DNA from: Paramoeba atlantica
Lineage: Eukaryota; Protista; Discosea
DNA length: 64,000 nucleotides
NCBI GenBank assembly: GCA_977017575.1
Contig: CDRNVI010000030.1
Coordinates: forward strand, 1,155,808-1,219,807
Direction of reading: 5' to 3'
Under the pieces are notes generated by a model that worked only from the letters and a program-made list of their open reading frames with translations, did no database searches and was not told where the DNA came from. This document shows positions 21,956-43,160 of this stretch, piece by piece. The position numbers and the translations under genes are program-made. Position 1 is the first letter of the stretch, and the number at the start of each line of letters is the position of its first letter.

Positions 21956-23617
21956 TCACACAGAAGCCACTGCCTCATCTTTGGTCGTGTGACAGGTGTG
22001 GCACCATGGCCTCCACGAGTAATTAAAACTTCCACACGTGGAACACATAAATTGTCCCGGCTGTAGCGGCTCCGTGTCACCCTCGATCATCGCCCTGCGT
22101 GTTCCACAAAAGAGACAAAGCATACGAGCCCCATAGTTCACCTCGCTACAGCACTCACACACGAAATTCCCCCTCCGAGAGAAGCTCCTCACCACGGAGC
22201 AGGTCGCGTCCCGGGCCGCACCGCATACCCAACACATTTTCCTCTTGTTCGGGTTGATCGTTGCGCACTGGCCACACTTCCAGTCCCCGAGCGAGGCACT
22301 CTCCCACGAGCGGCTCTCCGCCACTTTGTGTACGTGATGCGGGTCCGTGTATACCGTGCTACAGTGCGCACACACCTGGGTCTCCTCCCGAAAGTTAATC
22401 CGCTCACATTTCACACACAACCAGTCCCCCGGCACAGCCTCCGCGAGCGTCCTCCCGAGGTTATACGGTATCCTCGGCGTGTCCTCCCCCCGCTCTTTCG
22501 CACACATAAAACACTTTCTCCTTTGCCGGTAATTCGCCACCCCACACCCCTCACAACACCAGTCCCCCGGCCACGCCTCAAACCCCTCCCCCAACCCCAC
22601 CACCACCTCTTTCCCTCCCCCCTCCCCCCTCCCTTTCCCACACCTCACACACCCCTTCCGCTGCCCCCCCACATTATTCCACCCACACCCCCCACAGTTC
22701 CAGTCCCCCCCCCTCGGCCCCCCCTCCCTCCCCTCCACCATCTCCACCCGCTCACTCACCCCACTCCCACACCGCACACAGCCCACCCGGTACCCATAAT
22801 TCCACAGCTCACACTGCTCACACCTCCAATCCCCCCGCCTACTCCCCGCCCGCACGTGCGCCGGTCCCGCCCCCTCCGGCCGCCCCGCCTCACACTTAAT
22901 GCAACACACCCGCATGCTGAAGTTCAGCACCCCGCACTGGGGGCAGTAGAACTCCCCCTCCTTCAGCTCCGGCAGCGGGATCACCCTACTCCCCACGACC
23001 GCCCCCTCCCCCCCCCTCTCCCGCGGGGCCTCACACCGGTAGCACCCCCCCCGTGCCTTGAAGTTCCACAGCGCGCAGTGGGTGCACTGCCAGTCCCCGG
23101 GGCGGGGGGCCATCCCCCCCGCGGGGCGCCACGGGGAGCCGTCGGGGTGGGCCCAGCGCAGGCAGCCCGGGGCGAGGGGGGTGGCGCACACGTAGCACGC
23201 CGTGCGGGTCTTGAAGTTCGACCCCTCGCAGACGGGGCAGAGCCAGTCCCCGGGGAGCCGCGGGGGGTCGCGGTCGGGGGGGGGCCGGGAGGGGGGGCCA
23301 CCACGACGCCGGCGGGTCCCGCGGAGGCGACCGGGGGGGTGGTGGGGCTGGAGCTCACCGAATTCATCGAAGTGGGGACGACGACGGGGGGAGGGACGGA
23401 AGGGGGAGGGGGGGTAGGGGTTGCGGTTGGAGGCGTCGTCATCGTAGGTGGGGGGGTGGTGGTGGTGGTGGTGATAGGGGGAGGGGGGTGGGGGGGTGGA
23501 GGGGGAGGAAGAGGGGTTGGTGGAGGGGGAGAATTGTACCATGGGGGTACGGTAGAGAGAGGGGAGAGGGCATGGGGGGGAGGGGGGGAGACGAAAGGTG
23601 CGAAAGAGGATACGCAT
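21956..23617 (-). CDS. RanBP2-type zinc-finger array protein (10 fingers)
   Basis: Ten W/F-x-C-x2-C-x3-N-x6/7-C-x2-C repeats counted by hand; Arg-rich, acid-free N-terminus (MRILFRTFRLP). Confidence 0.85.
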   Translation of the reverse strand: MRILFRTFRLPPSPPCPLPSLYRTPMVQFSPSTNPSSSPSTPPPPSPYHHHHHHPPTYDDDASNRNPYPPSPFRPSPRRRPHFDEFGELQPHHPPGRLRGTRRRRGGPPSRPPPDRDPPRLPGDWLCPVCEGSNFKTRTACYVCATPLAPGCLRWAHPDGSPWRPAGGMAPRPGDWQCTHCALWNFKARGGCYRCEAPRERGGEGAVVGSRVIPLPELKEGEFYCPQCGVLNFSMRVCCIKCEAGRPEGAGPAHVRAGSRRGDWRCEQCELWNYGYRVGCVRCGSGVSERVEMVEGREGGPRGGDWNCGGCGWNNVGGQRKGCVRCGKGRGEGGGKEVVVGLGEGFEAWPGDWCCEGCGVANYRQRRKCFMCAKERGEDTPRIPYNLGRTLAEAVPGDWLCVKCERINFREETQVCAHCSTVYTDPHHVHKVAESRSWESASLGDWKCGQCATINPNKRKMCWVCGAARDATCSVVRSFSRRGNFVCECCSEVNYGARMLCLFCGTRRAMIEGDTEPLQPGQFMCSTCGSFNYSWRPWCHTCHTTKDEAVASV

Positions 23618-24096: not shown

Positions 24097-27000
24097 TTAT
24101 GCAGCAATGGTCACTGAAGTGGGATCGGCGTCACTCGAACTGCATACTTCAGTTGGAGCCTCACCATCTTCGTTCCAAAACTCGGAGCTTGGTTGGCTTT
24201 GTGCTTCGTCTCCCCATCGATTGTGGCATACGTAGCAGTAGGTTCTCCAAGAATAGTTCAGCGTACCACAGAGATGGCATGGAACGGGCTTCTTCTTTAC
24301 GGTGGATTCGTACAAGGATGTTTTGGGTTTGGGGGATGTACGACGCATGTGGCAGCTCATACATATGGTGCGGTAGGCGTAGTTCTCCGCATCACACTTT
24401 GCACAATGCCAATCTGAATTATGGGGGTACATTCGCGACACAGATGAGGTGCTGCACGCGTTACATGTAGTGGTTTCATTTTTATTGATAGTCCCACATT
24501 TACATAGCCAACTGTTCGAGTCGCTGGACTTCACATCCGGAACAATCATCGCTGTATGGTCCTTTTCTTTTGTACACGAGTGACACTTCTTGTCGTCTTT
24601 TTTATTGTAATTTCGACACGAGAGGCATTTCCAGTCACCCGGAACGAAGTTCAGTGACCCCGTCGGGTTAAGTTTCAAGTCGCAGGCATCACAATAGGGG
24701 TGGTGACGAAAATTTGTTGCCTCACAAGCGACACATTTCCAGTGATCAGCTGGATGTACGATATTCACCTCTTTCTTCTTGTTACCGCAGCGCACGCAAT
24801 CGTTTCGTTTCGAAAAGTTCATAACGTTGCATTCTGCACAAATCCATTCCTTATTCCGAAGCGCCAAATTGATAATCTCACAATGCTCTGTTTTTTTAGC
24901 GCTGCAACGATAGCACGACGACCGGACACGAAAATTTATTGTAAGGCATTCGCCACACTTCCAATCGCCGTTCAGAATTTTAAACTCAACAAGTTGACAC
25001 TTGTCATCAAGTGCACGTTGACACCACACGCATACGGCTGACTTGGCATGATTCATTTTATCGCAGCCCGCACATTTCCAGTCTCCATAAAAGCTATCCT
25101 CCCAACTTAAAGGGGGGACAACGTAGCATTCGTTCGTTTGGCTGGAACTACAAGAAACACAAAGAGATCTCGCTCGAAAGTTGAGCTTCCTGCAATTCTG
25201 ACAATACCAATCTCCAGGGGCCTCGACTTTCTTGAATTCGTTTTCCTCCGCACCTTGGACGACTAGACACGTATCAGTTTTGCCAGATTGGCATTGAATG
25301 CACTTAATTCTTTTAGAAAAGTTTAAAGTTGAGCATTTTTCACAGGTCCAGTTACCTACTTTCCATCGTGATTCTGGGATAGAAGCACATTCTGGGCTTC
25401 TAGGGGCTTGACAGCCAAAACAGTTTTCCCTATTTCCGTAGTTTGCGCAGCGGCACTGTGAACAAAACCAATCTCCATGCCTTCTAGGAGTTTCATTTAT
25501 TTCTTCGCACTCCGAATTTTTTTCAGACTTGCAGTTATAGCAGGTGGATCTACTCCGAAGATTCATCATCTTGCAGACTGCACATTTCCAGTCGCCTTGC
25601 ATTGCTTCAATTTCTACAATTTGAGAATCCGGGCTTTTGACTTTGTTACACCATTGACAGGAAGCATCCCATGATAAGTTCATAAGTTGACAGGAATTGC
25701 ACTTCCAATCTCCGAAAAAGCTATCTTCCCATAGTCTTGCAGGTACAATCGCACATTCAAGGTTTTTCTTTTCTTTGCATTTGACACAAGAACTACGTTC
25801 CCGCTTGTTATGGCTCTGACACTGCCTACATATCCAGTCTCCTGGAAGTAAAATACCGCTGTAGACTTCTCTCATTTTTCTCATTCCAAAAGCGATAGGG
25901 CAGTGGGCAGTTCTCGCACTTCTGCACTGCATACAAAGTTGTCTGTGCGCGAAATTTAACTTTGAACAATGCTGACAAAGCCAATCACCAATCTGGGAGA
26001 GAGCAGGAATCTCTGTTTTCGCTGTATCGTCTTTTGGCTTTTTACACTGCGCACATTCGTTCGACATGTGAAAAAAATAATTCAGGGCATGACAATAACC
26101 ACAGGTCCAGTCTCCAGGCTTATACTCACCTTTCATTTCATGGCAAGAAGCATCTTTTGGAGAAGAACAGGTAACACAAGCACTGTTGCACCGGTAGTTA
26201 TATGCTTTGCATTGACTGCACTTCCAATCCCCTTGTAAGACCTGTACTTCAACGATTTGGCAATCTGTTTTCTTCGCTTCGGAACACCACACACACATAG
26301 TACGTTGTAAAGGGTTCATTTGGTCACACGCCCGACAGTGCCAGTCGCCATATCGACTCTCCTCCCATGATTTGGCAGGGATAACGGTGCAATCTGGAAG
26401 GCGAGGGACATCACAACTTCTACAGCTCACAAAGGAGGGCGACGACGTCTGCTCGCATGTTTTACATACCCAATCACCGGGTAGCGCTCCTTTATCTCCT
26501 ACTGATCTTGGAACTCTGCCTTCCGTCCGTAAAGTTTGACAAGAGCTGTCCTTTGTGTACAGACAACGAAGGCATTCCATTCGAGCGCCAAAGTTAACGA
26601 TTTTGCATTTTGAGCAAACCCAATCACCAGGAAAAAGAACTTTGGGATTAGAGACATCATTTTGCGCACAGGAAGGGTCTTTTTCTTTTCTACATTTCGT
26701 GCATTTCGTTTCGGTACCAAAATTAATGCGTTCACACGAGCATTGCCAATCTCCCGGTCGTCCCTCCTGAAGAGATCGAGGAAGAATGCTTTCACAATGG
26801 GGTGATTTGGCTTCTGAGCAACGAATGCAAATGTCTCTTGACGAAAAATTAATCTCTTTACAGTGAACACAAATCCAATCCCCACGTTTAGCCTCAGTGG
26901 AAGATATGGCACGCAGAGGTCGTACCGTGGGGGCCAGTTCGGTCAATATTCTGGCTTCATCGGACTTCGAAGAAAGACACCTGATACAGGACGTTCGCCG

Positions 27001-29115
27001 CGCATTGTTTGCTTCCTTGCAAGTAGTACATTCCCAATCTCCAAGGCGCGATAGCTCAAAAGGTCTTCGAGGAGGTCCGTACTCCTTGACGCGACAGTCA
27101 TCCGTTTTTTCTTTCTGGCATTCCGTACACTTTTCGGTACTGCGGAAATTGACCGCTTGGCAGGAAGCACATTCCCAGTCGCCTCCTCTTGCGTGTATCA
27201 CGAATTCGCGCTTGATAATACGACACGTATCCGTCTTCTTAAAGGTACAACCAAAACATGTCTCGCGACTGCGACGGTTGCATGTGAAACATGTGCAACA
27301 AATCCAGTCCCCAGGCATCTCCTGTAGACGCTTTCGTGGCGTCAAAATATCTGCTGTTGCCTCAGTTATGACTTCACAGGTCTCACTACGAGGTTCTCTG
27401 CAGCCAAAGCAGGTTATCATCTGAGAGGAAAAGTTTAACAGAGAACATTTTGAACAGATCCAATCTCCAACTCTGGTTTTTCCTGGAGGACTCGTCGCTC
27501 CTTCAATCGTTATACATTCGTCTGTTTTCGTTGTTGTGCATTTAATACACGACGTGCGAACTGCAAAATTACTTAGTCCGCAACTTTGGCAGATCCAATC
27601 ACCGGGAGATGCTGCGACAACATCCTTGTAAGGGACCGTCTCGACCTCTATACCTTTCGCTGCGTAGCACTTGATACAATTAGGACGATTGCGATAATTC
27701 AAAGTGGTGCAAGTTGCACAGCGCCAATCCCCCGCCCGAAGACGTTTCCTGCCAAGCGGCTGTCCAAGAACTGCAGGACGAATTTCTTTACAGCCAAAGC
27801 ACTCCGTGCGCTCTGAAAAATTTACTGTCTCACACTTCGGACAAACATATTGCCCAGGTCGCAAAGCAACTACTTCACAATCCGATGATTTGGTTTCGTT
27901 ACACGCTACGCATGTTTCTCGAGCTTTGAAATTCATTGACCCGCATTTGTTACATTTCCAGTCACCGTATCTGTAGCGAATCGCGCGCTTCACGATGATG
28001 ATGCAATTTTCTGTGTGTTCCGCATTGCAGTTGACGCACAAATTCTTGTCGTGTGGATTCACAAATTTGCACGACTCGCAAATCCAGTCGTTTGCAGCAC
28101 AATCTGCGTCCGTTATAGTTTTGCAGGTTTCGTCACGTGTGTACTCGCATTTAATACATATAGCTCGGCTTCGAAAATTCAAAGTTTCACACTGGGAGCA
28201 ATTCCAATCGCCGGGACTGCCTTTACGCTGGGGTACGTCCGACACAATCTCGCATGACTCATCTCGGGGTCGCGAACATGACTCACACTGCTCAGCGCGC
28301 ATTCTGTTTATAAACTTACAATCAGAGCAGTACCAATCACCAGGGCGTGCTCTTCGAGGAACAACTGGACCCGCAGAGCTTGGACGTGGCTCACTGCATC
28401 GCCTGCATTGCTCATACTCACCGAAGTTGAACGACTTACAGTTTTCGCAGACGAATTGTCCTTTTTTCAAAAAGCTCGGTTGAATTTTTGCTGCATCGAT
28501 TGTCCAGGGCGCAGTGCAGCGCACGCATAAGTCCCGTGAGGCCCAATTCTCGAACTGACATTGTACACAAGTCCAGTCACCAGGAACTGGTCGACGCTCC
28601 GCCGGTGGCTTCCACGGAGTTCCATCCGGATGACTCCAACGCGGCGCGTCCTCGGCTATTGGAGCAAAGCACTGCTTACATTCCATGTTTCTACAAAAAT
28701 TTACCATTTCACACTGTTGACACAACCAGTCTCCCGGTTTGGGCTCCGGGGCAAGCCGCTGCATTCGTCCCCGACCACGTCCTCTGCCACGTCCCCGACC
28801 TCCGCGCCCTCGACCGCCCGACCTTCTGCTTAAACTTTCACCAAACTCATCGTACGTTCGATTTGCACCCCGGCCGCGCCGTCTATCGTACGTAGTGGAA
28901 GCGTACTGATCATTTTCTCCTTGAGAAGAATTGTCCTGGTAATAACTCCGACCGGAAAAGTGGTATACAGCGACAGTATCCGCTTGCAAGCACGTCTCGT
29001 GCAGTTGCTTTCTCGAGAAACTGAAAGTAGGAGGCGATGCTTTTCCAATGTGATATTGGAACAAGTCGCGTGAAGCGCCTTTTTGCTTCAACAGCACTGC
29101 GTAAAAACGGTGCAT
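24097..29115 (-). CDS. Giant RanBP2-type zinc-finger array protein (about 36 fingers) with N-terminal RG repeat
   Basis: 1672 aa; about 36 GDWxCxxC..N..CxxC units; GGRGRGGRGRGRGRGRG precedes finger 1. Confidence 0.95.
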   Translation of the reverse strand: MHRFYAVLLKQKGASRDLFQYHIGKASPPTFSFSRKQLHETCLQADTVAVYHFSGRSYYQDNSSQGENDQYASTTYDRRRGRGANRTYDEFGESLSRRSGGRGRGGRGRGRGRGRGRMQRLAPEPKPGDWLCQQCEMVNFCRNMECKQCFAPIAEDAPRWSHPDGTPWKPPAERRPVPGDWTCVQCQFENWASRDLCVRCTAPWTIDAAKIQPSFLKKGQFVCENCKSFNFGEYEQCRRCSEPRPSSAGPVVPRRARPGDWYCSDCKFINRMRAEQCESCSRPRDESCEIVSDVPQRKGSPGDWNCSQCETLNFRSRAICIKCEYTRDETCKTITDADCAANDWICESCKFVNPHDKNLCVNCNAEHTENCIIIVKRAIRYRYGDWKCNKCGSMNFKARETCVACNETKSSDCEVVALRPGQYVCPKCETVNFSERTECFGCKEIRPAVLGQPLGRKRLRAGDWRCATCTTLNYRNRPNCIKCYAAKGIEVETVPYKDVVAASPGDWICQSCGLSNFAVRTSCIKCTTTKTDECITIEGATSPPGKTRVGDWICSKCSLLNFSSQMITCFGCREPRSETCEVITEATADILTPRKRLQEMPGDWICCTCFTCNRRSRETCFGCTFKKTDTCRIIKREFVIHARGGDWECASCQAVNFRSTEKCTECQKEKTDDCRVKEYGPPRRPFELSRLGDWECTTCKEANNARRTSCIRCLSSKSDEARILTELAPTVRPLRAISSTEAKRGDWICVHCKEINFSSRDICIRCSEAKSPHCESILPRSLQEGRPGDWQCSCERINFGTETKCTKCRKEKDPSCAQNDVSNPKVLFPGDWVCSKCKIVNFGARMECLRCLYTKDSSCQTLRTEGRVPRSVGDKGALPGDWVCKTCEQTSSPSFVSCRSCDVPRLPDCTVIPAKSWEESRYGDWHCRACDQMNPLQRTMCVWCSEAKKTDCQIVEVQVLQGDWKCSQCKAYNYRCNSACVTCSSPKDASCHEMKGEYKPGDWTCGYCHALNYFFHMSNECAQCKKPKDDTAKTEIPALSQIGDWLCQHCSKLNFAHRQLCMQCRSARTAHCPIAFGMRKMREVYSGILLPGDWICRQCQSHNKRERSSCVKCKEKKNLECAIVPARLWEDSFFGDWKCNSCQLMNLSWDASCQWCNKVKSPDSQIVEIEAMQGDWKCAVCKMMNLRSRSTCYNCKSEKNSECEEINETPRRHGDWFCSQCRCANYGNRENCFGCQAPRSPECASIPESRWKVGNWTCEKCSTLNFSKRIKCIQCQSGKTDTCLVVQGAEENEFKKVEAPGDWYCQNCRKLNFRARSLCVSCSSSQTNECYVVPPLSWEDSFYGDWKCAGCDKMNHAKSAVCVWCQRALDDKCQLVEFKILNGDWKCGECLTINFRVRSSCYRCSAKKTEHCEIINLALRNKEWICAECNVMNFSKRNDCVRCGNKKKEVNIVHPADHWKCVACEATNFRHHPYCDACDLKLNPTGSLNFVPGDWKCLSCRNYNKKDDKKCHSCTKEKDHTAMIVPDVKSSDSNSWLCKCGTINKNETTTCNACSTSSVSRMYPHNSDWHCAKCDAENYAYRTICMSCHMRRTSPKPKTSLYESTVKKKPVPCHLCGTLNYSWRTYCYVCHNRWGDEAQSQPSSEFWNEDGEAPTEVCSSSDADPTSVTIAA

Positions 29116-29402: not shown

Positions 29403-29568
29403 CATTAAAAATAAAATGTGATTATTCTTTTTAATTTCTTTTTAATTTTGGACCACCGTAGCCCACTTCTATATCCTTTTCTTCTAATATAAACCCTCCG
29501 TCACGAATAAGTGACCACAGGCTAAAATCTGTGTTGAGGGGGGTATGGGAGTATACCACATTATCACT

Positions 29569-29639
29569 TCTTCGTAAACACGCTTGTTACCAGTCCCAAG
29601 CCCGGCACCGCCATATTCGGCGGAATGTGAGGGTGAAGA
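29569..29639 (+). ncRNA. Twister self-cleaving ribozyme (type P1 with P5 hairpin)
   Basis: P1 UCUUCG/UGAAGA; U29575-A-A; P2 ACAC/AUGU; T2 GC(29582-3) with GC(29600-1); P4 CCAG/CCGG; L4 UCCCAAGC; P5 CCGCC/GGCGG; G29629-A-GGG giving T1 with CCC. Confidence 0.85.
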
Positions 29640-29804
29640 TTTCAATACATCTATAGCACGATTATAAACTTAAGAATATAATTGAACTACTCCTTTCTAG
29701 TATCCAGTAGAACTACTACATTTAGCTCCATTTAACTAAACAATCTTACACGCCTGCAAATGTCAGGCATCAATTGAATTCACTTAGTCCCGGCCTGGCA
29801 ATGC

Positions 29805-30480
29805 CCATTCTCTGTAACGAGGCCCATGGGCTCCGTACCCTTCGGGGTACCACCGCCCCAGTATTCGTGCTGGGAGGCCCATGGGCTCCGTGTCCTTCGG
29901 GGCACACTTGCCGTTGCATTTATTCATCCTCTGTGACCAGGCCCATGGGCTCCGTACCCTTCGGGGTACAACCGCCCCAGCATTCGTGCCCCAGCATTCG
30001 TTGCGTTTATTCATCCTCTGTAACGAGGCCCATGGGCTCCGTACCCTTCGGGGTACCACCGCCCCAGCATTCGTGCTGAGAGGCCCATGGGCTCCGTACC
30101 CTTCGGGGTACCACCGCCCCAGCATTCGTGCTGGGAGGCCCATGGGCTCCGTACCCTTCGGGGCACACTTGCCGTTGCGTTTATATATTCATCCTCTGTA
30201 ACGAGGCCCATGAGCTCCGCACCCTTCGGGGTACCACCGCCCCAGCATTCGTGCTGGGAGGCCCATGGGCTCCGTACCCTTCGGGGTACCACCGCCCCAG
30301 CATTCGTGCTGGGGGGCCCATGGGCTCCGTGTCCTTCTGGGCACACTTGCCGTTGCATTTATTCATCCTCTGTAACGAGGCCCATGGGCTCCGTACCCCC
30401 TTCGGGATACCACCGCCCCAGCATTCGTGCTGGGAGGCCCATGGGCTCCGCGTCCTTCGGGGCACACTTGCCGTTGCATT
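29805..30480 (+). repeat. Tandem array of GC-rich hairpin units (55/64-nt subunits, 11 copies of the core)
   Basis: GAGGCCCATGGGCTCC occurs 11 times, each followed by GTACCC-TTCG-GGGTAC or GTGTCC-TTCG-GGGCAC. Confidence 0.9.
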
Positions 30481-31984
30481 TGCGCTATACATCTTCCTCT
30501 CCAGCATGTTTTTTCAATGAAGTGAAAACAGAATAAAAACAGAAGGGAGAGGGTGGGAAGTTGTGAGCTGGGAAGCTGTGTGTGCTATGGCATGCCTGGC
30601 ACCGGTCAAAGTAAAGGACTTTTGCAGAAGTCCTTTTTTGACCACCAACCTCTTAATATCCATTCGTTGATTCCGAACGGGAGTTAGTTATCACCAATAA
30701 CGTTAGTTATCACCAATTTACAGATCCATGATCACACTGCCTAAATACCCCCTATTTCGCGTGCTCGTATACAATGTCCGACAGGACCAACGACCCAATA
30801 TTTCACAAAAAAATTGACTTTGGTGAATCTTGGTTATATATTGCCGTTGTACTGCATGGTAAGTTGAAGACCTTGTGCACGAAGGCTAGATAACGGCTAA
30901 ATATGGTCCTATGTACAACCTTAACCTCGAAACAACCGTTTCAGTATAAAGGGTGACCCCTTAAAAACGCCAAAAAACGACGATTTCTGGTGTTTTTTGG
31001 GGTAAATTGTATTTTTGCGCCTTTTTCGGTCGTTTTTTATCGGGGTAACCCCTTATACCAAAATAGAGATTCTTGGAAATGTATGCTGCTGAATCACACT
31101 TTCTATACTTCACTGCCATTACATCTACTCACGAGTGACCTCAGGTGCGGGGCTTGCTTGTAACATAAAAAATGAAAATTGAAAAAAATGGTTAGGTGTT
31201 CCACAAAAGTCCTTGACTTATGCAAAAGTCCTTGACTTATGCAATAGTCCTTGACTTGCAGGTCCTTATCCCAGGACAGCGGTACCTAGTTTAGGTGTCT
31301 GGAGGCAAAAGCCCCCGTTTGCGAGCAAGGCCCAACTGTGAGCGAAGCCCTGGGACAGAATTATATTTTTTAGCGACCCGCACGCTCCAGTCAGGAACCA
31401 CTGAAATTTAAGCCCTAATTGCACTTCTGTCTTGCACCCGGTGAGGCCTCGGAGCTGGGAGAGGCCCCATACCCCACAACTACCACCTTCCCCCCTATTT
31501 AGCGGAAGTCGCAAGTCCTTTACTTATGCAATAGTCATAGCAGCAGTAATAATTTTTGTAATAGAAATTATTAATAATTTATTATTATTATTATAAGAAG
31601 GTGAATTATTAATAATTATTATGAGGACCTTTTTAGCCCTCATGGAGCGTATAGTAAGCGTACACATGTATACATGTGGATATTTCAGAAGAGATTGTCG
31701 TCTCCCATTTTGTATGTCAAGCCCAATCGATACAGTAGCAAATGATATTCTAGGTTTAACCACGTTAATAAAATTCGTTTAAAAAGGGAAAAACAAGGAA
31801 AATGATAGGAAAACATAGAAAAAACCCTTGTAAACGAAGAAAAATCAAAAACGAAGGTGAGATTCAAAAGAGGTGTACTATTTTAAAATCACGGTATTAC
31901 AAAGGTTTAATTATAATTTAATAATTATAATCTAATAATTATAATAATATAATAATTATAATTTAATAATTATACGACTCAATG

Positions 31985-33250
31985 TTATGGCCATTGCTTG
32001 AGAATTTTAAAGCCCACTGCTGAAAATGCAGAAACAGTTTTTGGTTGGGTCTCACTGCCATGTCTAACGTAGCTAAAGAGCTTCTCTTTTTTTCGAAAGT
32101 CTGTGTGAACGATACGGATATCCTCGTTCTGCACTACCGCCCGACTTTCTACTTTTAGATTGTCCAAGGAAGTACCAACGAAGTGTAATTCCATTAGACA
32201 AATGAATTCCTTGTGGGCTACTTCCCGTTCTTTTCCCAAAAGCAATTTGCTCCAATTCACCGATAAGGTGTTGAATTCCGAAGGAAATGAAAGAGTGTCT
32301 TCCTCGCGTTCTTTGCGCGCCTTGTGTCGGTTTAGGTTCTCCGGATCATTGAAAAAGACTCGCACCATACCCTCAAGTAGGTCATCAGAAAGATGTCTCT
32401 TCTTGTTTTATATGTGCAACATGTGACCAAATTCGCGTTCCGTGTGTGTTTCAGAAAAGTGAATCCGGTTAATTGCTTGTCTAAACACTCGGATGTGCTT
32501 GTATTTTTGAGAAACAGAACTTCGCCAATAGTCCTCCACAACTTGTTGCTGTGTATCATCAACCATGCGACCAAATTCCAACACTTCTCGTGACACATTA
32601 TTTTCGAAGATACGCGTTACCTTACTCTTTTTACCGTAATACACGAGCAGTGCGTCTACGACAATTTTTTTCATGTGCTTCACTATCGTATCAGAAGGGA
32701 AATCCGAGTACTTAACAAATGGTGATAGGGCGCACAAGCAAATAAAAATCGGGGAGCGCAGTTGCTTGTAATAGCGCATGCGCAGATACGGTAAAGTAAG
32801 ATACGGTAAAGTAAGATAAAGTAGTAGGTGTTGCAGCGGAGGTATGCCAGTATTCAAGCAGGGTGAAAAACTCGTTTACACACTGAAGCGCAGTCGTGTC
32901 CGACGCCTCGCATAATTTTCCAAAAATTCTGAGAGGCATGAAAAGATGAAATACCCGCATCATATTTTCCTGATCCTGAGTAGAGAATGCCTGAAGTGTG
33001 TCTGGGCTATTGGCTGCCTTCAAGGCGGAATGAATGCGCTCATAACCAGACACCATCTTGTGTCATTTTTTTTTGGTGGCGTGGCCCCAGGCTCGCCATT
33101 CGCATAATGGTCACATAAGTTCAGACACACAGCCCACTCAGGTAGTAACGCGGTCGTTTGCCACTGGGGACAGTGTTCCTCGATGATGATATCGGTACTT
33201 CCTATTGGAGGTTCGGGGTCTCCTTTAACCCTGCTAAACCGGTCCAAAGC
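31985..33250 (-). pseudogene. hAT-like transposase C-terminal half (frameshifted)
   Basis: DTRWCLVMS (RW motif) and DYWRSS..KYKHIRVF..SETHTEREFGHML (hAT dimerisation-domain ER.F motif). Confidence 0.6.
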
Positions 33251-33829
33251 CCGGGGCTATGTAAACAAATACATAGAAAGGTGATGGAAGGACTCTTGTG
33301 AACTTATGAAAATGATTGCATTCTAGAATCGAGGATTCCAAGTTATTTTTTTGGTTTGTAAAAGACCGCTTTTCCGTAAACCTTTATCATGTTTTTTACC
33401 TAGCCATTTTCATGTTTTACAGCGCGGACAATGTATACGTAAAAAGAGAGAGGGGGGGAGATGCGTCCGACCCGCGGGCCTTGTCCCTCGCAGGGTTAAA
33501 GGAGACCCCGAACCTCCATTAGGAAGTACCGCGTATGGAGCCGATTGTGCCCATACACTTCGAGCGAGATGCGCACACTTCCTGCAGAGGGCAGGGGTCG
33601 GACGCCTAACCACAAGACACAGCGCGGAGGCTCCCACGTTAAGGCATTAGAATATTTTAGTCTTATTTTATTTTATAAGGATGTTTTATAAAGATGATCG
33701 GCATTCATAGCTTGCACCTCAGAAGACACATGGCTCCAAAACATGTACGACTAATAGCTGAGATCTCTAGTTCCACCTCAAATAGTTGTCCTCAATAGCG
33801 TGATCACTGCGGGTTAGTAAGTCAATTAA

Positions 33830-34079
33830 TCAATTAGTTAGTCAGTTAGTTAGCTAGTCAGTCAGTCAGTCAGTCAGTCAGTCAGTTAGTTAGTTAGTTA
33901 GTGAGTGAGTGAGTGAGTGAGTGAGTGAGTGAGTGAGTGAGTGAGTGAGTGAGTGAGTGAGTCAATCAGTCAGTCAGTTAGTTAGCTAGTTAGTTAGTTA
34001 AGTTAGTTTTAGTTAATTAGTTAGTCAGTTAGCCATTTAATTAGTTAGTTAGTTAGTTAGTTAGCTAGTTAGTTAGTTT

Positions 34080-34131
<52 letters not shown>

Positions 34132-34290
34132 ATCAGTTAGTTAGTCAGTGAATCAGTCAGTCAGTTAGTTGGTCAGTCAGTTCTTTAGTTAATCAGTTAG
34201 TCAGTTAGTTAGTTAGTCAGTCGCTTAGTCAGTTAGTGAGTGAGTTAGTTAGTTGGTTAGTTAGTTAGTCAGTTAGTTAGTTAGTCTATG
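33830..34290 (+). repeat. Compound tetranucleotide microsatellite (TTAG/TCAG/TGAG)n
   Basis: About 460 bp of AGTT, AGTC and AGTG units in blocks. Confidence 0.9.
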
Positions 34291-34566
34291 GGTAGCTGGG
34301 TTAGTTAAGCGATTAGTTTGGTTGGTCTATTCTTTAGTCTTCAATCAGTTAATCTTTTGGCCAGTTAATAGTTAGTGAAAAATTTGTTATTTTTAGAGAA
34401 AAGTTTATGAATTGAGGCGCTACTGAGCTAGTTTCGGCCTAGTTGCTTAATTTCTTCCTGAATATTTCAATACGACCTTACATTGGTATGAACTACGGAG
34501 GATTCACTACGATAAACTAACTGCGTCCTTATTCAGCATATTTTCATCAGCTTTTACTTTTTTGAT

Positions 34567-35502
34567 ATGGTTGACGCCATTCCAGAAGTTGTACCCACTG
34601 AAAGTACGCTTTCTGAGGGCCGCGCTGCGTTTCTTGAGCTGTGCTCCATGAAGCGCATGCGATTAACGATAAAAGAGAAGCTTGTTCAGCTTCTCCCAAC
34701 CGCCATTGAGTTTGTAAAGTCCTACATGTCAGTTACTCCCTTGTTAGAAGAAGCTTCTGCAGTGGCTGGAGATGGAGACACGACACGCGGCGCACAAGTG
34801 ATCATCCGCACCGTAACTGCTCTCAAAAGTGGTACCTTTTCTTCGCGTGATGTTTCTCAGCCGGTTCTTGTGGCTTTACGCGATCAGCTGTGCGTTCACG
34901 AGGGCGCCCTCACTGCCCCTAGTTCTCAATCTGTAGCTCCCCAAGCAGACGACCAGCGTAAGATGAGCCGCCTGCCCAAGGATATGCAAGAGGCTTTTCG
35001 TTCCATTGTAGGAACACGGGAGGATCCCCGCTGTTCTGAAGCGTTGCATCAGTGTCTTAACCAAACTGGTTTTAGCGCTGCGACTTGGCTCACGCCACGG
35101 GTCAAGGAGGCTGTGCGTAACGCCGTCGGCACCCTCCCAGACTCAGTTTACTATGCAAAACTGGTCTCCGAATTCCCCCCGGACTCGCGGCTCACCTCCT
35201 TGGATTCAGAAGGAGTTCGTCTTGGAGTTTGGACCCTCCTTTGTAAGCTGGGGGGCGTTCTCCTGTCCTATCAGCTGGCGCACGAAAATGCCCACGTGCC
35301 AGCCGAAACCCTGGAGAAACTGATGCTCGACGACGCATCAGAACGATCAAACAAGTCGATCGTCTCCTTTCTTGCTGGACACACGCGAGCGCTCAGTATC
35401 ATTACTGGTGCGCAGCAGCAAACAAAGCGAGTCCCCCTTCCGTCTTTCTCTGGTCCCCGCCCTCAGTCTTTCATGCCCCGCTCTCAGTCTTTCGTTCCCT
35501 AA
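34567..35502 (+). CDS. Orphan helical ORF against the cluster strand, possibly a retroelement gag-like ORF1
   Basis: Clean 311-aa ATG ORF on the + strand, between two halves of a broken hAT; no motif recognised. Confidence 0.6.
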   Translation: MVDAIPEVVPTESTLSEGRAAFLELCSMKRMRLTIKEKLVQLLPTAIEFVKSYMSVTPLLEEASAVAGDGDTTRGAQVIIRTVTALKSGTFSSRDVSQPVLVALRDQLCVHEGALTAPSSQSVAPQADDQRKMSRLPKDMQEAFRSIVGTREDPRCSEALHQCLNQTGFSAATWLTPRVKEAVRNAVGTLPDSVYYAKLVSEFPPDSRLTSLDSEGVRLGVWTLLCKLGGVLLSYQLAHENAHVPAETLEKLMLDDASERSNKSIVSFLAGHTRALSIITGAQQQTKRVPLPSFSGPRPQSFMPRSQSFVP

Positions 35503-35516
35503 TAAACTAAAATATT

Positions 35517-36340
35517 CTAATGCCTTAACGTGGGAGCCTCCGCGCTGTGTCTTGTGGTTAGGCGTCCGACCCCTGCCCTCTGCAGGAAGTGTGCGCATCT
35601 CGCTCGAAGTGTATGGGCACAATCGGCTCTATACGCGGTACATAACAGTTGAACAGTATGTGGCCAACAAGGCAACAAAAAGGCATGACACCCGGAAAAG
35701 ACTTTGCTAGCCCCAAGATTCTCCCTCAGATTTTCCTCAAACCTTTTAGCATCTCCCTGTGTGTTGGTGGCGTTGTCTGCTGTCATGGCTATGATATCAA
35801 CGTTTCGTTTGTCGCAGATTTCAAAGAATGCTTTTAGGTTCCCTCGGAGGTTATTGGAGCCTTTGTCCACGATTGCTTTTGCGACAACAGTGTGATGACA
35901 CCGCGCTTCTGGATCATGTACACCGATGTTAATGTATTCAATATTTTGAATCTTACCCAGGTCAAAGAATCCACTGACATCGATAATCTCCCTAGGAAGA
36001 AGGTCTTCGCCTCGTTTTTTTATTGCCTTCTTGACTTGATCCTGGTTCATCGTTGTGTTTATGGTTGTGCGCAGTGGGCCACGCAAAATAATGAATGCGA
36101 TGGGAGTAGATGAAAAAAAGACAAATTTGAGATTCTGACGCTTCTGGGATTACACATGTATTCAAGTATGTTTGCCTCAAGGAAGCTTCAGCAACTGTAC
36201 CAGTTACCTCCACCATCTCATTATTTCTCTCAAGCGATCGCTTACGCTCCGGTTGCTCATGGCGTCGAACAATTTTCGCTTTCGCGGCAACAAACTCTTC
36301 TTTGTGGGCAGTAGTTGATATAACGTCCTTCCAGTTGCCA
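35517..36340 (-). pseudogene. hAT-like transposase N-terminal half
   Basis: IIAMTADNATN (catalytic D), LPCWPHTVQL (CxxH), upstream MHGNWKDV..AHKEE (BED-finger-like). Confidence 0.65.
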
Positions 36341-36355
36341 TGCATCGATTTCATA

Positions 36356-37097
36356 CAGGGGTGTAAATTTGGATGTGGGGGGGGTCTAAAATTTATAAAA
36401 ATTGGCCAATTTCGGAAAATAATAGCGCATTCGAAAGCTCTCGAACAGGGCTCATGAACGTAACATGACCGAACTAGGCACAAGGGGGTATTACCCCCTA
36501 GACAAAGAACCCCCAAATGCAATTTGCAACTTTCTAAAGCAATAGCAAATATCAAAAAAAAAAAAATTTAATTGCCATTATCGTCGTTTTATCTCAATTA
36601 CAATACGGCATCGCTTTCGAAAGCTCTGCATGGCATTTTCAGGGGCCTTGAAACGCTGCTTCGATCGCAATGATCAAATCTGCGCGATTCCGAGGGGCTC
36701 AACCATTTTTGAAGTCGCCCACTATGGAAAATAAATTTTTAGAGCGAAAAAGATTGTGTTGTTTCGTAATCGGCAACAAGAACCATGCACCAGCTTGCTT
36801 TTACGTGCTCAGGCGAAGAATAAGCCCTTTCGTAGTCTTTGTATTCGGGCGATCGCCCACAACCCCGTCTTTGTTGCATAAATCAGGGGAGAAATCAGAA
36901 AACCTGTGAAAAATGCAAGATTTTGTCTCCCAAAAAAATGAGTTTTTTTATGTGCACTTGAAAATCTAATTAACGCAGATGCCGTACATGCACGTTCATG
37001 AGCCCTGTTCGAGGGCTCTCGAATGCGCTATTATTTTCCAAAATTGGCCAAGTTTTATAAATTTTAGACCCCCCCCACATCCAAATTTACACCCCTT
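36356..37097. mobile_element. 742-bp MITE, inverted copy of 18440-19180
   Basis: Same TIRs and internal sequence in the opposite orientation; TA flanks. Confidence 0.9.
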
Positions 37098-37201
37098 TAT
37101 GTTCAATAAGGACAGAATGAGATCGTTCTGCAGACTTCTTGATGGCTTTGTAGCCATATTTTTCATTGGCTCTTGGGCACTTCGTACATAACCAATAAAT
37201 C

Positions 37202-39258
37202 CATACCCCTGCCGGGTAAATGGGTAATTACCCACGTGGTGGTAAACGCGGGTAATTTACCCGGGTCATTGACCCATTTACCCGCTTTCACCCAGATTTA
37301 TCAACCAACCATACGATCCCGTACTAGAATAAAGCTCGATGACTGTGCCAACTTTGCTGAGCAAGTTGTCGCTACAGAAACAGTATCTCAATCCATAGAA
37401 GGAAAAATCCGTCTTTCATTCGGTTTCCCCCCTTTCCTATCCCCTAAACCAAACAATTTTGTTTTATTTTTTTTTATTTTTTTTTATTTTTTTCTTGACC
37501 TGGCGGGCTAATCCCCGCTTCATACAGTACTAATACTATACTGTATAGTAATCACTGTACTAAAATCAAATACAACTACTGCGTACAATCCACATAATGT
37601 TAGGTCAGTTATGTTCTGTATCTGACAATGATTCAAGCTCACTATCATTTTCCAGCGAATCAGAATCGCCTTGAGTCATATATCCTAGCTTGTCGCAATT
37701 TCCTCGCACGAATATCTGGTGCGATACAACATCGGGAGTAAGGGAGGCCTGGCGTGAGCTATACATATATCCAAGCACGGAAAGCCAGGAGTCGCACTTG
37801 TTGACCAGGGGTGGCGTCCAAACGTAGTGTACGGCAGCTTCGTAAATCGCTGGGAACATTCTTCCGCCTTCAGAACTCCCTGATCGAAGCGAGCCAGAGC
37901 GAGATCCAGAGCAACTCCCTTGTATTTCCCTTTTGCTGCACTCGCTCGTCCTCCTGAATAAAAGGACTGACTGAACGCTTTTTTGAAAAGAAAGCACGGT
38001 GACTCTTCGTAGGGCTTCAAGGTCGTTTGGCAAATGTTATTCAGCATATGACCTATGCAAGACAGGAGTATTATCGAAGGGACACGAGAAGATATGCCTT
38101 GCTGAAGTACTGCAGTGTCACTCTCCCCAATCGGGGAAATTTGGTCATATATGCGTTTGAGAGCTCCTTCGCAATTGTTACGTGCCACGTGATTCACAGA
38201 ACTTCCGTCCGCGATCATGAATTTTAGCTTTAAAAGTCGGTGCTCACCAAGATTCGCCTGAAGAGTAAACACTAGTTGTTCGGCTACTGTTTTTCCATCA
38301 AAAGCACGATGACTAGGAGAATAAATGGGAGGTAAGACGTATTCTTCAGGGCCTACATATAAGACGGACAATAAAATGTGCTCAGACTTTGCTCGGTCGA
38401 TTCCTGCATCAACGGCAATTCCGTACACCATGTGTAAGTCAATGGCAGCGCAAAGCTTCTCCCAGACTTCGTGGGCTAAAATTTCACAGTGTTGATGCCA
38501 CTTCTTCAAATTTGTTTCCGGAATAGCCTCTTTGATAACATTCGGTGGAAGGTCGGGGCGGAGATCCTCATACTTGCGAATCAGCCAAACGAATTTACTC
38601 GACGGAAGGTTTGTTAGGGTTTGTAGACATGGGAGCACCTTCCCAGCGAATCTTTGAACGGCCGCTCTCTGAATAAACGAAACCTGCGCAGTCGCCAAGC
38701 GAGCTCGCTCCACGCCCTCACGACACTTGCGTACATGCTTATGATAGACGTTCTTACATCGGCAATGAGATTGAAACGTGCAACCCTCTGTCGTGCACAC
38801 AAAGTGTACTTTTTGGTTAAGGGGGTCTGTGAGAACATCCGCGTGTTCATGCGGACAGTTTGGCGGGCAACGAGCCAAATTAAAGTGCCCAGACAAAGAC
38901 TTCACCGTCATCTTGTGCCGCTCGTTTCGCTTTGATCGCTTTGGGTCCGGGGTCACTATCTCATCCTCAGAGCTTGATTCAGATGAAACGATCGGTTCGG
39001 GCGTACTGACTGTCGATGATCTTCGTTTGGGCATGTAATAAATAGAAGATAAAAGTGCAACGCTATCAGCAAAGTAAATGATATTATGATTGAAGGAAAA
39101 AGAATCTGAGATTTTTCTGATAGATATACAAAAATAAAACATTCAAAATCATTTAAGGTACAACTTTTCAGTTCCTGTCTTCGAGCGGGTAAACGTGGGT
39201 AAAGCGGGTAAATGGGTAATTTACCCGGGTAATTACCCATTTACCCGGCAGGGGTATG
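37202..39258 (-). mobile_element. hAT-like transposon copy A (internally deleted)
   Basis: 32-bp perfect TIR CATACCCCTGCCGGGTAAATGGGTAATTACCC; flanks TAAATC/TAAATA; ORF from ATG 39034 with GIAVDAG, MIADGSSVN, SCIGH; about 890 bp missing relative to copy B at about 37860. Confidence 0.9.
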
Positions 39259-39454
39259 TAAATAGCATTCCCAGGGTCCCGCGCAAACCACCACTCCATC
39301 AACTGATCACCATCAACGCTTTTTGGCATATGAAAAGATTGAAATTAAAATGACCGAAAATACGAATCGCTATGCCTGAAAAAGTTAGATTATCAATTGT
39401 AAGAATTTATAATAGTTATTAATAATTATTAATAATTCTTTAATAATAATTATT

Positions 39455-39549
39455 GCGGTTGTTGTAAAACTACCGCTCTACCCTCGATTATTGAAAAAAA
39501 AGTGAACAAAAACAGTGAAAATATAAAGAGGAACACAGTAATATAATAG
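39455..39549 (+). repeat. Dispersed ~100-bp repeat (also 42111-42215, 56856-56965, inverted at 46425-46473)
   Basis: GCGGT(T/G)GTTGTAAAACTACCGCTCTACCCTCGATTATTGAAAAAAAAGTGA..GAGGAACACAGTAAT recurs four times. Confidence 0.8.
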
Positions 39550-39564
39550 AGGGGCTGCGGGTCG

Positions 39565-39680
39565 CGGGTTCGGTGCGGGTTCGGTGCGGGTTCGGTGCGG
39601 GTTCGGCGCGGGTTCGGTGCGGGTTCGGTGCGGGTTCGGTGCGGGTTCGGTGCGGGTTCGGTGCGGGTTCGGCACGGGTT
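39565..39680 (+). repeat. 11-bp minisatellite (GGGTTCGGTGC) x~10
   Basis: Direct tandem repeats; two more units near 42052-42075; resembles the CGGTGCGGGT subterminal motif of hAT copy B. Confidence 0.9.
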
Positions 39681-39890
39681 GAAAAAAATCCTCTGAAAGC
39701 ATGCGAAATTAGTCGGAGCTGCAGATATTGAAGGAGAAAAATAGTTAGATCGAAGGAGAAATCATAATGTGCGACATACATAGTGTACATAATATACGAT
39801 AATAACAAAAATTTATAAGCCATGTATACGATATGACTACGTAGTTTACATTTCGCAATTCATCGAAAACGACTAGATCCTTAATTTTAT

Positions 39891-40988
39891 TTAGTTTTTG
39901 ATCCATGCTGTGGTTTCATGTTGGGGAACATATCCCACATCGTATATGTGTTCTTTGAGCCAATCCCTCCGTTCATCAATCGGTTTGACTAAACCACACC
40001 CTTTGCTACACCAACAAAAAGATGAGTCATCGATATTTTGTAAGTGTACATTTATTTCACTATCAAAGTCGTATTGGGGTTCTGATGCAAGCAAACCATA
40101 CACTGCAACAGATACAATCTGAACGGCATCCTTTACCCACGTAATATCGTGGTCCGTTCCATGAAAAAAACGAAATTTATCGAAATGAGCGAAACAACGC
40201 TCGATTCTTGAACGAATCCAAGAATGCATGCGGTTGAACCGATTCTGGTGTTCATCAAGGCAACCTTTGCGTGGTGCCTTGAATGGAACAAAACAGTGGT
40301 TGCAACCCACGTATCCTAGATCCGCCAAATACATTTCATCTTCATGATGGTCAAAAAGAAATGTTCCGTGCGTGGTTCTTTCTTTATAAATTTTCGCATC
40401 ATGTACACTGCCCGGAACGGGTCCGCGAAAAAAAATAGGGACTCCGGCAAGCGTAAGCCAGAACTCCACTTTAAAACAGTGTTCCCTGTGCTTGCCGGAG
40501 TAGGTCGCATCTTTTTTTCTCATTTCCTGAGAGGCTTCGTCCCATACGTCCCGCGGTTTCCTTGCACGACATGGGATTGTCATGACGTCCATCATACATG
40601 TCACGTCAGACATCCAAGATACCCCATGCTTGAAACGAAGTTTCGGATTCATTAAAGCAGGAGAGCGGCAAAGATCAGCGATGCGGCTAAAGTCATCGCG
40701 GAGAGTCCTGATGGATAGAGGAGGAGTTTCGGGAGCAATCCACATGGGCTGTAAATCATACAGTTGCTCCCATGTGCAGTTCAAAGCGCACATAGCTAAG
40801 GAAGAGCTAAGGCGTCTGAGATCAGTGTCCGTGGCGACAAGAGGACTTGCTCTCTGTAGCTCAAGAAAAAAATCTGTGAGTTGCTCTCTGGTAATGCCGT
40901 ACATGATAGAATTGCAGGATAAAATAACGCCTAGAGAGAAAACAAAAAGTAAGATGACGTTCATGGGTAGGATACCTAACTTATTCAT
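39891..40988 (-). CDS. PIF/Harbinger-type (DDE_Tnp_4, IS5-related) transposase
   Basis: Uninterrupted ORF (ATG 40988); CMMDVM (D), YSGKHREHCFK, PGSVHDAKI, YLADLGY (D), RFNRMHSWIRSRIERCF (E). Confidence 0.85.
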   Translation of the reverse strand: MNKLGILPMNVILLFVFSLGVILSCNSIMYGITREQLTDFFLELQRASPLVATDTDLRRLSSSLAMCALNCTWEQLYDLQPMWIAPETPPLSIRTLRDDFSRIADLCRSPALMNPKLRFKHGVSWMSDVTCMMDVMTIPCRARKPRDVWDEASQEMRKKDATYSGKHREHCFKVEFWLTLAGVPIFFRGPVPGSVHDAKIYKERTTHGTFLFDHHEDEMYLADLGYVGCNHCFVPFKAPRKGCLDEHQNRFNRMHSWIRSRIERCFAHFDKFRFFHGTDHDITWVKDAVQIVSVAVYGLLASEPQYDFDSEINVHLQNIDDSSFCWCSKGCGLVKPIDERRDWLKEHIYDVGYVPQHETTAWIKN

Positions 40989-41141
40989 GATACAAGATGC
41001 ATGATATCTAAAAAAAGAATGATATATAAAGGTTAGCACTTCAAACTTCAAAAAAAACGAGCTTATCACTTCTCTTGAATTACAGCTCTTTTTCTCTTAC
41101 GTACGATTTGTGCGGGAAACGTTCGCTTCTGCGAGGGAAAA

Positions 41142-41807
41142 CTAAAGGGAAGGAAAGCGCATCACGCGAGAGGAACGTGGCTTCAAAGAGGCTTCCCCAA
41201 GCGAAGGTTGAGGGAGCGAGGAAGGTTGAGTGCGCAAGTTGGGTGAAGAGATCACCGTAGAAGAAAGGGATTCCTCTGCTACGTTTTCTTTACCCTGGCC
41301 ACTCTTCCGTTTGCGCCACAGAGTGCATGATCTGGAACGCTTTCCTGAAACAGAACGCCACACGTTCTCCACGAACTCTCGCACAGCTCCTTCATGAGGA
41401 GGGGCGTAGAGAGGGTTCTGTTCCAAGAAAGCTTCCAGATCACGCGTCGCCTCTGCAAGGAAGTAGACCCCTCGTGGCAGACAATCCAAGAGAAGGTGTC
41501 CTCGGCGCTCCACAAGGTGGAAGATGACACGCTGCAGCACTTGGGAGCTAACCTCCACGCCACACACAGAGCGTGTGGCATGTAAGTAGCTGTCCATCGT
41601 GCGCGATACGCGCCTCATGCATTCTTCCACCTTGGCTCCCAACTCCTCCTCAGTGACAACGAGTGCTGGAGGGGCGAAAGGAGTTTTGCGCTTCGTGAAG
41701 GTGCGCATAAGCGATGCGACAATGACGTCGTATACGTCATCATCCCTCGCAGATGTTACCTTCATACGTGAAGTGAAATCTTCGTTGCTCTCAACAGGGC
41801 TCATCAT
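41142..41807 (-). CDS. Hypothetical protein upstream of the Harbinger transposase (possible accessory ORF)
   Basis: 221-aa ATG ORF, same strand, about 150 bp from the transposase start; no Myb/SANT motif seen. Confidence 0.5.
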   Translation of the reverse strand: MMSPVESNEDFTSRMKVTSARDDDVYDVIVASLMRTFTKRKTPFAPPALVVTEEELGAKVEECMRRVSRTMDSYLHATRSVCGVEVSSQVLQRVIFHLVERRGHLLLDCLPRGVYFLAEATRDLEAFLEQNPLYAPPHEGAVREFVENVWRSVSGKRSRSCTLWRKRKSGQGKENVAEESLSSTVISSPNLRTQPSSLPQPSLGEASLKPRSSRVMRFPSL

Positions 41808-42268
41808 ATAAAAAGGAGGTTAATGTAAAAGAATTATGCATCTATTGTGGAGGGTATATTAATTGTACATTTGATTTGTGTAATGCATACACCGTTCGTA
41901 TACAGCACCGTATACAGCGTACACCGTATTTTCACAGTAAGGCGGCTATGTACGGTAACAAACTAAAAAAACTACACTTTAAGCTACTTTGTTAGTGTAC
42001 AATCCATTTTTTGGGTCTAAAATAGACCTCGTTCGACCTCAAATGCAAAGCGCGGGTTCGGTGCGGGTTCGGTGATGCACACCCGCAGCCCCTCAATAGA
42101 AGAAAAAAATTGCGGTGGTTGTAAAACTACCGCTCTACCCTCGATTATTGAAAAAAAAGTGAGCAAAAACAGTGAAAATATAAAGAGGAACACAGTAATA
42201 TAATAGAAGAAAAAAATATAAAAGGAGGCTCCGGTGGTCCAAAACTGAAAAAAAAAATAGAAAAAAAT

Positions 42269-42375
42269 GGGGGGTCCAGGGGGGGGGTCCAGGGGGGGGT
42301 CCAGGGGGGGGTCCAGGGGGGGTCCAGGGGGGGGTCCAGGGGGGTCCAGGGGGGGGGGGGTCCAGGGGAGGGGGT
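42269..42375 (+). repeat. (TCCAG-G6-12)x8 tandem G-run repeat
   Basis: Eight TCCAG spacers separated by long G-runs; meets the G-quadruplex pattern. Confidence 0.85.
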
Positions 42376-42958
42376 CATGGTTGAGCAATTTTTTTCGAAA
42401 AAATTAGTTTTCGAAAAAAAACGCAGAAAGGGTAGCCGGGGTCTTGGCGCGCATTTTCCACCCCCCTACCCGGGGGTGACCCCCCCGCGTATCCGCAGGA
42501 CGGGTCGGCCGAGTTCGGATTCTTTCGGAAAAAAAAATTTGAAAAAAATTTCAACTTGGCGAAAAAAATGGCAAAAAAAATATTTTTCCAAAATCGTTTC
42601 CCCTATTGTATTTTGATAGTTTGGGACCTACACTAGCTTTCTCTGCAGTTGCTTTCGCAAGGTATCCCTTCTTCGAACCGTGGTCCGCCCCTCAAAATGA
42701 CCCATTTTTGACTAAAAAAGGTGAAAAAGTATTTTTCGGACCTAAAGGGGCATTTTTGTGTCGAAAGAATGGTATGGTTGGAGTCGCATTCTCTACCCAA
42801 TACGTTCAGTAGGCTTCCATTCATGCCTACTAGTGATTTCCCACGCGCAAATGTCGGATTTAGTGCTCTGACAGCAAAAATACGCGAAAATCACCCCATT
42901 TTTACCCGAAATTCGGCTATTTTTGGCTATAATCTTTCCGTTTTCCAGGCTAAATTTT

Positions 42959-43068
42959 CTTTTTTAGGCTCTTCGTTAAACGCGGCGGTAGTTTTCAACG
43001 CGAAGCGCGCAGCATGAGTGACTTCTAAGTTGAGAACAACCACCGCGTTTAACGAAGAGCCTAAAAAA
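42959..43068. repeat. Foldback element with ~40-bp imperfect arms
   Basis: TTTTTTAGGCTCTTCGTTAAACGCGG..GTTTTCAAC / GTTGAGAAC..CCGCGTTTAACGAAGAGCCTAAAAAA. Confidence 0.7.
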
Positions 43069-43160
43069 GTTATTAAAGAAAAGAATTATTAAGAATTTTG
43101 CTACTATGGCAATAGTCCTTTACTTATGCAATAGTCCTTTGCTTATGCAAAAGTCCTTGA

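Follow-up and report, generated by a model that had tools for sequence, protein, structure and literature searches.

A twister-class motif probably marks the 5' end of a decayed tyrosine-recombinase retrotransposon copy in a kinetoplastid genome

Introduction

Twister ribozymes are abundant, yet to our knowledge only one biological role has been shown for them, that in the Perere-3 element of Schistosoma. HDV-like ribozymes of R2 and of the trypanosome elements L1Tc/NARTc are 5' self-cleaving RNAs that free the retroelement RNA from an upstream transcript, and the host of L1Tc is a kinetoplastid. These ribozymes belong to a different class from the twister described here; they cut right at their 5' edge, so that the element loses no sequence and requires no template for repair. 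For Perere-3, the published account places a twister-type ribozyme at the 5' end of the retrotransposon, where it is co-transcribed and releases the RNA (PMC8501958); a 5' twister on a retrotransposon is what the family described below has in common with Perere-3. The two differ in that Perere-3 is a non-LTR element that moves by target-primed reverse transcription, with a target duplication supplying P1, whereas the carrier here is a probable tyrosine-recombinase element with no target duplication. Unlike Perere-3, the element studied here has its predicted cut 17 nt inside the element and holds an internal inverted spare of those 17 nt.

The layout of the family is that of elements of the DIRS order, to which VIPER and TATE of kinetoplastids, including Bodo saltans, belong (PMC6681497). 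The family shares with DIRS-1, VIPER, SIRE and TATE the order Gag-like protein, putative recombinase and RT/RNase H (PMC6681497, PMC7192593), and with DIRS-1 an internal region complementary to the element ends; as in the likeness of SIRE to VIPER, it also includes short non-autonomous derivatives with common ends. A full-text literature search of partial coverage returned no paper joining twisters with kinetoplastids, DIRS, VIPER or tyrosine recombinases, in agreement with a preliminary description of this DNA that had known of no twisters in trypanosomatid retroposons. The pairing of a twister with a recombinase retroelement is apparently undescribed.

Here we analyzed a twister-like motif in a stretch of 64,000 nucleotides (the window; positions 1155808 to 1219807 of contig C30 in an assembly of 45.7 Mb and 248 contigs, here G000). 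Like twisters of type P1 (RF03160; Oryza sativa Osa-1-4 and environmental twisters), the motif has the UAA cut-site loop and the GC, UCCCAAGC and GAGGG blocks, with P1, P2, P4 and two pseudoknots in the same order and spacing. It differs from the Rfam twister-P1 consensus in lacking P3, in an added P5 hairpin, and in one mismatch each in P2 and P4; it differs from the Oryza and environmental twisters in its host, a kinetoplastid-like protist. In our view, it is very probably the twister from the 5' terminus of a tyrosine-recombinase (DIRS/VIPER-like) retrotransposon, in a copy that is dead and internally deleted, and we propose a mechanism for the family.

Results and Discussion

The motif occupies 29569-29639 on the + strand, and its sequence reads exactly as in the preliminary description. 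Alignment to Rfam, a model built from this genome's own copies, and covariation place it as a P1-open twister without P3 and with P5. P1 (29569-29574 with 29634-29639) forms six of six pairs, one of them G-U, while P2 (29578-29581 with 29625-29628) and P4 (29590-29593 with 29602-29605) form three of four each, leaving unpaired C29581.A29625 in the assembly and A29592.C29603, respectively. A P5 hairpin pairs 29608-29612 with 29619-29623. Both pseudoknots are intact, the first joining G29582 C29583 to G29600 C29601 and the second C29595-C29597 to G29631-G29633, and the predicted cut falls at U29575/A29576. All conserved twister nucleotides are present, namely, UAA at 29575-29577, GC at 29582-29583, UCCCAAGC at 29594-29601, and GAGGG at 29629-29633. 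The U/A cut site, both pseudoknots, and the P5 hairpin had all been reported beforehand and are found here, the predicted cut position 29575/29576 is supported, and the two stem mismatches noted in P2 and P4 are correct for the assembly, although read contigs with G at 29625 would restore P2. The antisense placement also holds, as the twister strand is opposite nearly all long open reading frames (ORFs) of the window, which are intron-free and mostly on the minus strand.

By Rfam, the motif is a poor match, and a chance resemblance to the twister consensus, with no ribozyme ancestry, would find its support here. The twister-P1 model (RF03160, clan CL00120), the type of search that the preliminary description had named, did align end to end with 29569-29639, but at 23.5 bits, far below the gathering score of 67.2; the E value was 0.0069 for the 301 nt searched and 1.5 for the whole window, and a search of the whole window with Rfam at the gathering threshold gave zero matches. 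This low score arises because the model expects the P3 that is absent here and has no room for P5. Likewise, folding the 71 nt by minimum free energy alone does not yield the twister structure, and the fold obtained does no better than shuffles (z of -0.63), a result that is not decisive because pseudoknots are outside the fold model. The nested twister fold has an energy of -11.6 kcal/mol in the window copy, where a non-twister fold at -19.9 competes with it, compared to -20.9 in an intact sister. Against chance, the core descriptor TAA-4N-GC-6N-CCNGTCCCAAGCCNGG matched once in the 64-kb window and in none of 100 shuffles, the motif is 91 to 95% identical to sister copies in the twister stretch, and the genome holds a large family of such motifs.

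Searched genome-wide, twister-P1 gave 56 sub-threshold sites in several subfamilies, the best copy at 39.1 bits and all below gathering. Thirty distinct family sequences were aligned (A1), and a model (R1) built from this alignment found at least 143 sites at E ≤0.01 among 150 candidates scored, duplicated contigs included. In the window, R1 matched 29569-29639 (69.0 bits, a score that is descriptive only and not independent evidence, since R1 includes this sequence), 33220-33293 (63.9 bits), and 1088-1155 (53.5 bits). Across A1 (n = 30), 91.9% of cells at the twister pairs are paired, compared to 37 to 54% when the 3' partners are slid by 1 to 3 columns. Both sides change in 12 of the 19 pairs, one pseudoknot pair included, and the covariation score of 0.453 stands against at most 0.145 for the slid versions and was reached by none of 500 shuffles. 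Helices P1, P2, and P4 have 84 to 98% of cells paired, and every P1 and P2 pair covaries: P2 reads ACAC:GUGU, CUCC:GGAG, or CCCU:AGGG by subfamily, and the third pair of P4 is G-C, A-U, or U-A. The second pseudoknot is mostly CCC:GGG and becomes CCA:UGG in one subfamily (6 of 30 sequences), with all cells paired. Covariation that includes a pseudoknot pair, the at least 143 members, and the shuffle test together refute chance resemblance, to which we leave practically no probability. Rfam alone is weak, and the significance of the call comes from the genome family; judged by its sequence and that of its relatives, 29569-29639 is a genuine member of the twister class. Every subfamily head examined begins with a twister, and the word ribozyme is absent from the VIPER/TATE study (PMC6681497). 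A metagenome scan with the head and core of the window copy's subfamily gave no matches.

The twister was found to be the front of a repeated retroelement, drifted in sequence and split by a 12.6-kb insertion, rather than a stand-alone feature of the host locus. Sister copies of its subfamily have nine different 5' flanks, and homology among them begins sharply at 29558/29559 with CATTATCAC. The element spans 29559-45456 on the + strand, of which the element proper makes up about 3.3 kb, internally deleted. Its first 81 nt reach through the twister, which begins 11 nt inside the element, so that a cut at U29575/A29576 would remove the first 17 nt (29559-29575, +); these start where homology among copies starts and include CATTATC, the 7-nt end core, as well as the 5' strand of P1. 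Downstream on the same strand follow a leader common to the sisters (29640-29805), a G+C-rich hairpin tandem array with periods of 55 and 121 to 178 nt (29806-30481), whose length differs between copies, and the element body up to a break (30482-30603). Homology with the sisters runs from 29559 to 30603 and then stops, and the sisters' next part, the inverted head, resumes at 43178. Between these positions lies a nested insertion of 12,565 bp (30604-43168), with terminal inverted repeats matching at 22 of 27 nt and a perfect 9-bp target-site duplication, the left copy being the last 9 nt of the body (30595-30603, CCTGGCACC) and the right copy 43169-43177. The CCTGGCACC flanks and the terminal inverted repeats indicate that a transposon, or a nest of transposons, split the element.

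Beyond the insertion, the + strand continues with the internal complementary region (43178-43276), made of an inverted copy of the head (43178-43223) and an inverted copy of the 3' end (43224-43276); it matches the 3' terminus at 45336-45449 and the head from 29559. A reading of 43150-43224 as a separate, dead minus-strand head was rejected, since this piece represents the element's own internal complementary region. Remnants of an RT/RNase H ORF are found at 44363-44977 (+), where tblastn with a full-length relative matched residues 72-205 and 516-583 of its 585-aa ORF, with 62% identity over 74 aa and an E of 5e-28. The 3' terminus (45336-45456, +) is complementary to the internal region, and its last 7 nt (45450-45456, CATTTTC) repeat the end core.

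The borders of the element were fixed by empty sites. In six other copies of the host repeat, the outer flanks lie 13 to 15 nt apart and the element is absent; the empty sites read ACC-A-TATTTTC-GTGTAG and the filled site ACC-A-[CATTATC ... CCCT]-CATTTTC-GTGTAG, by which A29558 is a base of the target. The element inserted at a short homology; it has the 7-nt core at each end, and the target was not duplicated, which is what insertion by a recombinase would be expected to give. Each of the copies examined is a lone insertion, and none forms part of a tandem array. The window element lacks the gag gene, the recombinase gene, and most of the RT gene, and is unable to move on its own. The leader hairpin array, seen here at 29806-30481 and in sisters such as L042, differs in length by copy, with about 2 units at the low end and more than 15 at the high end.

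The class of the element was read from 7-kb relatives, which encode Gag-like, putative tyrosine-recombinase, and RT/RNase H proteins in this order. One of them, L053 (C30:377400-386400), is a full-length member of a neighbouring subfamily, in which the element runs from 186 to about 7132 with a twister at its head. Its internal region (1370-1533) repeats, in inverted orientation, the 3' end (7007-7132) and, directly joined to this, the 5' start (186-231), and three ORFs follow it; each subfamily's internal region matches its own head. ORF2 (293 aa) matches Phage_int_SAM_4 and Phage_integrase below the Pfam cut-offs, with the motifs LRSCE, HTLRH, and HY, and all 10 of its 10 nearest atlas clusters are tyrosine recombinases. 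ORF3 (585 aa) matches RVT_1 and RVT_3 below the Pfam cut-offs, RT motifs A and B are readable, and its nearest atlas clusters are euglenozoan RT/RNase H proteins. In PDB sequence searches, the recombinase and RT ORFs gave chance-level matches only, and a homologue search with the recombinase ORF returned six unnamed proteins without Pfam domains, apparently from the same genome. Repeat searches of L053 and of L044 found neither the long inverted terminal repeats of DIRS-1 nor the split direct repeats of Ngaro and VIPER; the only repeat pairs are those between the internal region and the termini. In the RT of L053 (4694-6451), motif C reads W-I-D-N instead of Y-x-D-D.

Compared to its sisters, all of them natural copies, the window copy is decaying, since the other copies of the subfamily pair perfectly at its mismatch sites. 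In the sisters, P2 (GUGU) and P4 (CCGG) are paired at four of four positions, and the window copy reads AUGU and CCAG; the changes are G>A at 29592, G>A at 29625, and C>U at 29569. The mismatch in P2 is in doubt because a near-identical duplicate of the locus on contig C3, with the same flanks and the change at 29592, has G at 29625, as do all contigs covering this position from three DNA runs; one 139-nt contig spans 29520-29658 with G at 29625 as its sole difference. An allele, a rare variant, or an error of the assembly could thus account for this mismatch, and by comparison with the sisters the ribozyme is drifted by two or three transitions. The C3 duplicate (L032, C3:599194-603887) is decayed further, by a P1 change and a large deletion, and has no equivalent of window positions 31485-45433. 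At its deletion junction (C3:602380-602420), the 15-nt AACTCCCTCATTTTC is present in two copies, suggesting that the deletion ran from one element-end core to another.

These data also bear on the reading implicit in the preliminary description, that the host took over the motif for self-cleavage, the RNA processed being an antisense or intergenic transcript of this locus. In its favour, no core nucleotide is lost and neither pseudoknot is broken, and a survey of more than 1900 natural twisters reported broad tolerance of mismatches in P2 and P4, the helices in which the window copy has its own (PMC11662667). Yet the motif sits in its standard position in a standard copy of the element, its stems have lost pairs that the sisters retain, the element is disrupted, and its C3 duplicate decays further; adoption by the host is accordingly very improbable. 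According to the same study, an A.C mismatch in P4 reduces twister cleavage only modestly, and the sensitive parts are the pseudoknots and the catalytic residues (PMC11662667), which are intact in the window copy. The 71-nt RNA of this copy, if transcribed, may still cut itself, probably more slowly than its intact sisters; we put the chance of detectable in vitro cleavage at about one half for the sequence as assembled, and higher with G at 29625.

For working members of the family, we propose the following mechanism. No promoter is evident in the element itself, which would probably be transcribed within longer host transcripts; genes in this type of genome lack individual promoters, and RNA release from longer transcripts suits a genome with polycistronic transcription. 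The twister would cut the RNA 17 nt inside the element and so free a defined 5' end. The lost 17 nt would be kept as a spare in the internal complementary region, the inverted copy of the joined 3' and 5' ends, which, by analogy with DIRS-1, could template the missing end and the circle junction during cDNA synthesis. The recombinase would then insert the circle at a short look-alike of the 7-nt core, without target duplication, and such an insertion at a core look-alike is demonstrated for the window copy by the empty sites. The window copy itself would no longer be capable of any of these steps.

The spare was assessed by comparing heads with internal regions. As far as the cut, the two agree at every position (and for 2 nt more in subfamily D, that of the window copy); past the cut, they differ at fixed positions, in independent copies, and the differences would destroy the first pseudoknot and the loop. 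A perfect spare upstream of the cut with divergence after it is the pattern that end repair predicts, and the anatomy of the element thus suggests a repair role for the internal region. This comparison also weighs on a different account, in which tandem or circular element DNA gives rise to multimeric transcripts that the twister cuts into unit-length RNAs, as happens in rolling-circle replicons and retrozymes; each RNA would then carry the 17 nt at its 3' end, with no loss of sequence. A circular DNA stage is generally assumed for recombinase retroelements, the 7-nt core is repeated at both element ends, and one ribozyme per unit would suffice, all of which fit unit-length processing. That the examined copies are single insertions instead of tandem arrays does not fit it, nor does an internal region that spares perfectly what precedes the cut and diverges after it, and we regard unit-length processing as unlikely, though less so than adoption by the host.

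Release followed by end repair, extended to the whole group, leads to a broader and tentative proposal, to which we give slightly less than an even chance: that twisters are the standard device by which kinetoplastid tyrosine-recombinase retrotransposons define their 5' ends, the internal region rebuilding the discarded 17 nt (about 34 nt in another subfamily). If true, the proposal would add a hitherto undescribed strategy of retrotransposition and give twisters a second natural role, and it would explain how promoter-less elements escape from polycistronic transcripts. Compared with Perere-3, the twister here stands at the front of another class of retroelement, and the host belongs to another eukaryotic supergroup. 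The model of a cut 17 nt inside the element, followed by restoration from an internal inverted spare, is testable, and the genome offers about 140 twisters as a natural series in which compensatory changes occur, also in a pseudoknot. The site itself is a decaying relic, and its value is that of an example that is dated and has well-defined borders, and for which an empty site, a nested insertion, and a duplicate copy exist.

Other features of the genome and the window were recorded. The probable kinetoplastid origin given in the preliminary description is supported by a KMP-11 match at 151 bits, where none of 14 control genomes matches, and by about 800 spliced-leader-like words. A homologue search with the Nup107-like protein of the window matched that protein alone and did not inform on the organism. 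This word, CAGTTTCTGTACCTTGTTG, occurs at about 800 dispersed places in the assembly, on both strands. At L071:1462-1520, a spliced-leader-like stretch lies between a poly(A) run upstream and an ATG downstream, an arrangement that looks like a retroposed, trans-spliced RNA. The full-length element L053 sits within spliced-leader-like sequence, at the core CAGTTTC; targeting of spliced-leader sequences by the family was considered and dismissed, as only 1 of 23 heads checked has such flanks.

The window contains two further twister heads, and all three are on the + strand, opposite most long ORFs. The second belongs to a small element of another subfamily (33193-35641, +), with its twister at 33220-33293, in which the pseudoknot is of the compensated form CCA:UGG. 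The first 42 nt of this element recur in inverted orientation at 33490-33531, next to a 136-nt inverted copy (33526-33661) of its 3' end (35506-35641), a layout that is the same as in the first element; a (TTAG)n tract (33834-34285) and a 311-aa ORF without a Pfam match (34567-35502) follow. The third head (1077-1155, +; 53.5 bits with R1) starts with CATTATCAC and is almost certainly dead, because six nt of the UCCCAAGC loop and P4 are deleted.

The nested insertion (30604-43168) has 27-nt terminal inverted repeats and subterminal 19-nt repeats and holds a DDE_Tnp_4 (Harbinger/PIF-type) ORF at 39891-41069 (-), the second twister-headed element, and other repeats; a small look-alike of it, with matching inverted ends, lies at 30604-31260. 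Elsewhere in the window, a 317-aa ORF (7292-8245, +) combines HTH_38 with the integrase core rve; this architecture is IS30-like, although the genome is eukaryotic. RanBP2-type zinc fingers abound in two ORFs that lie next to each other, at 24097-29115 (-) and 21956-23617 (-), with 12 and 3 repeats, respectively, and the larger one ends about 440 nt upstream of the element.
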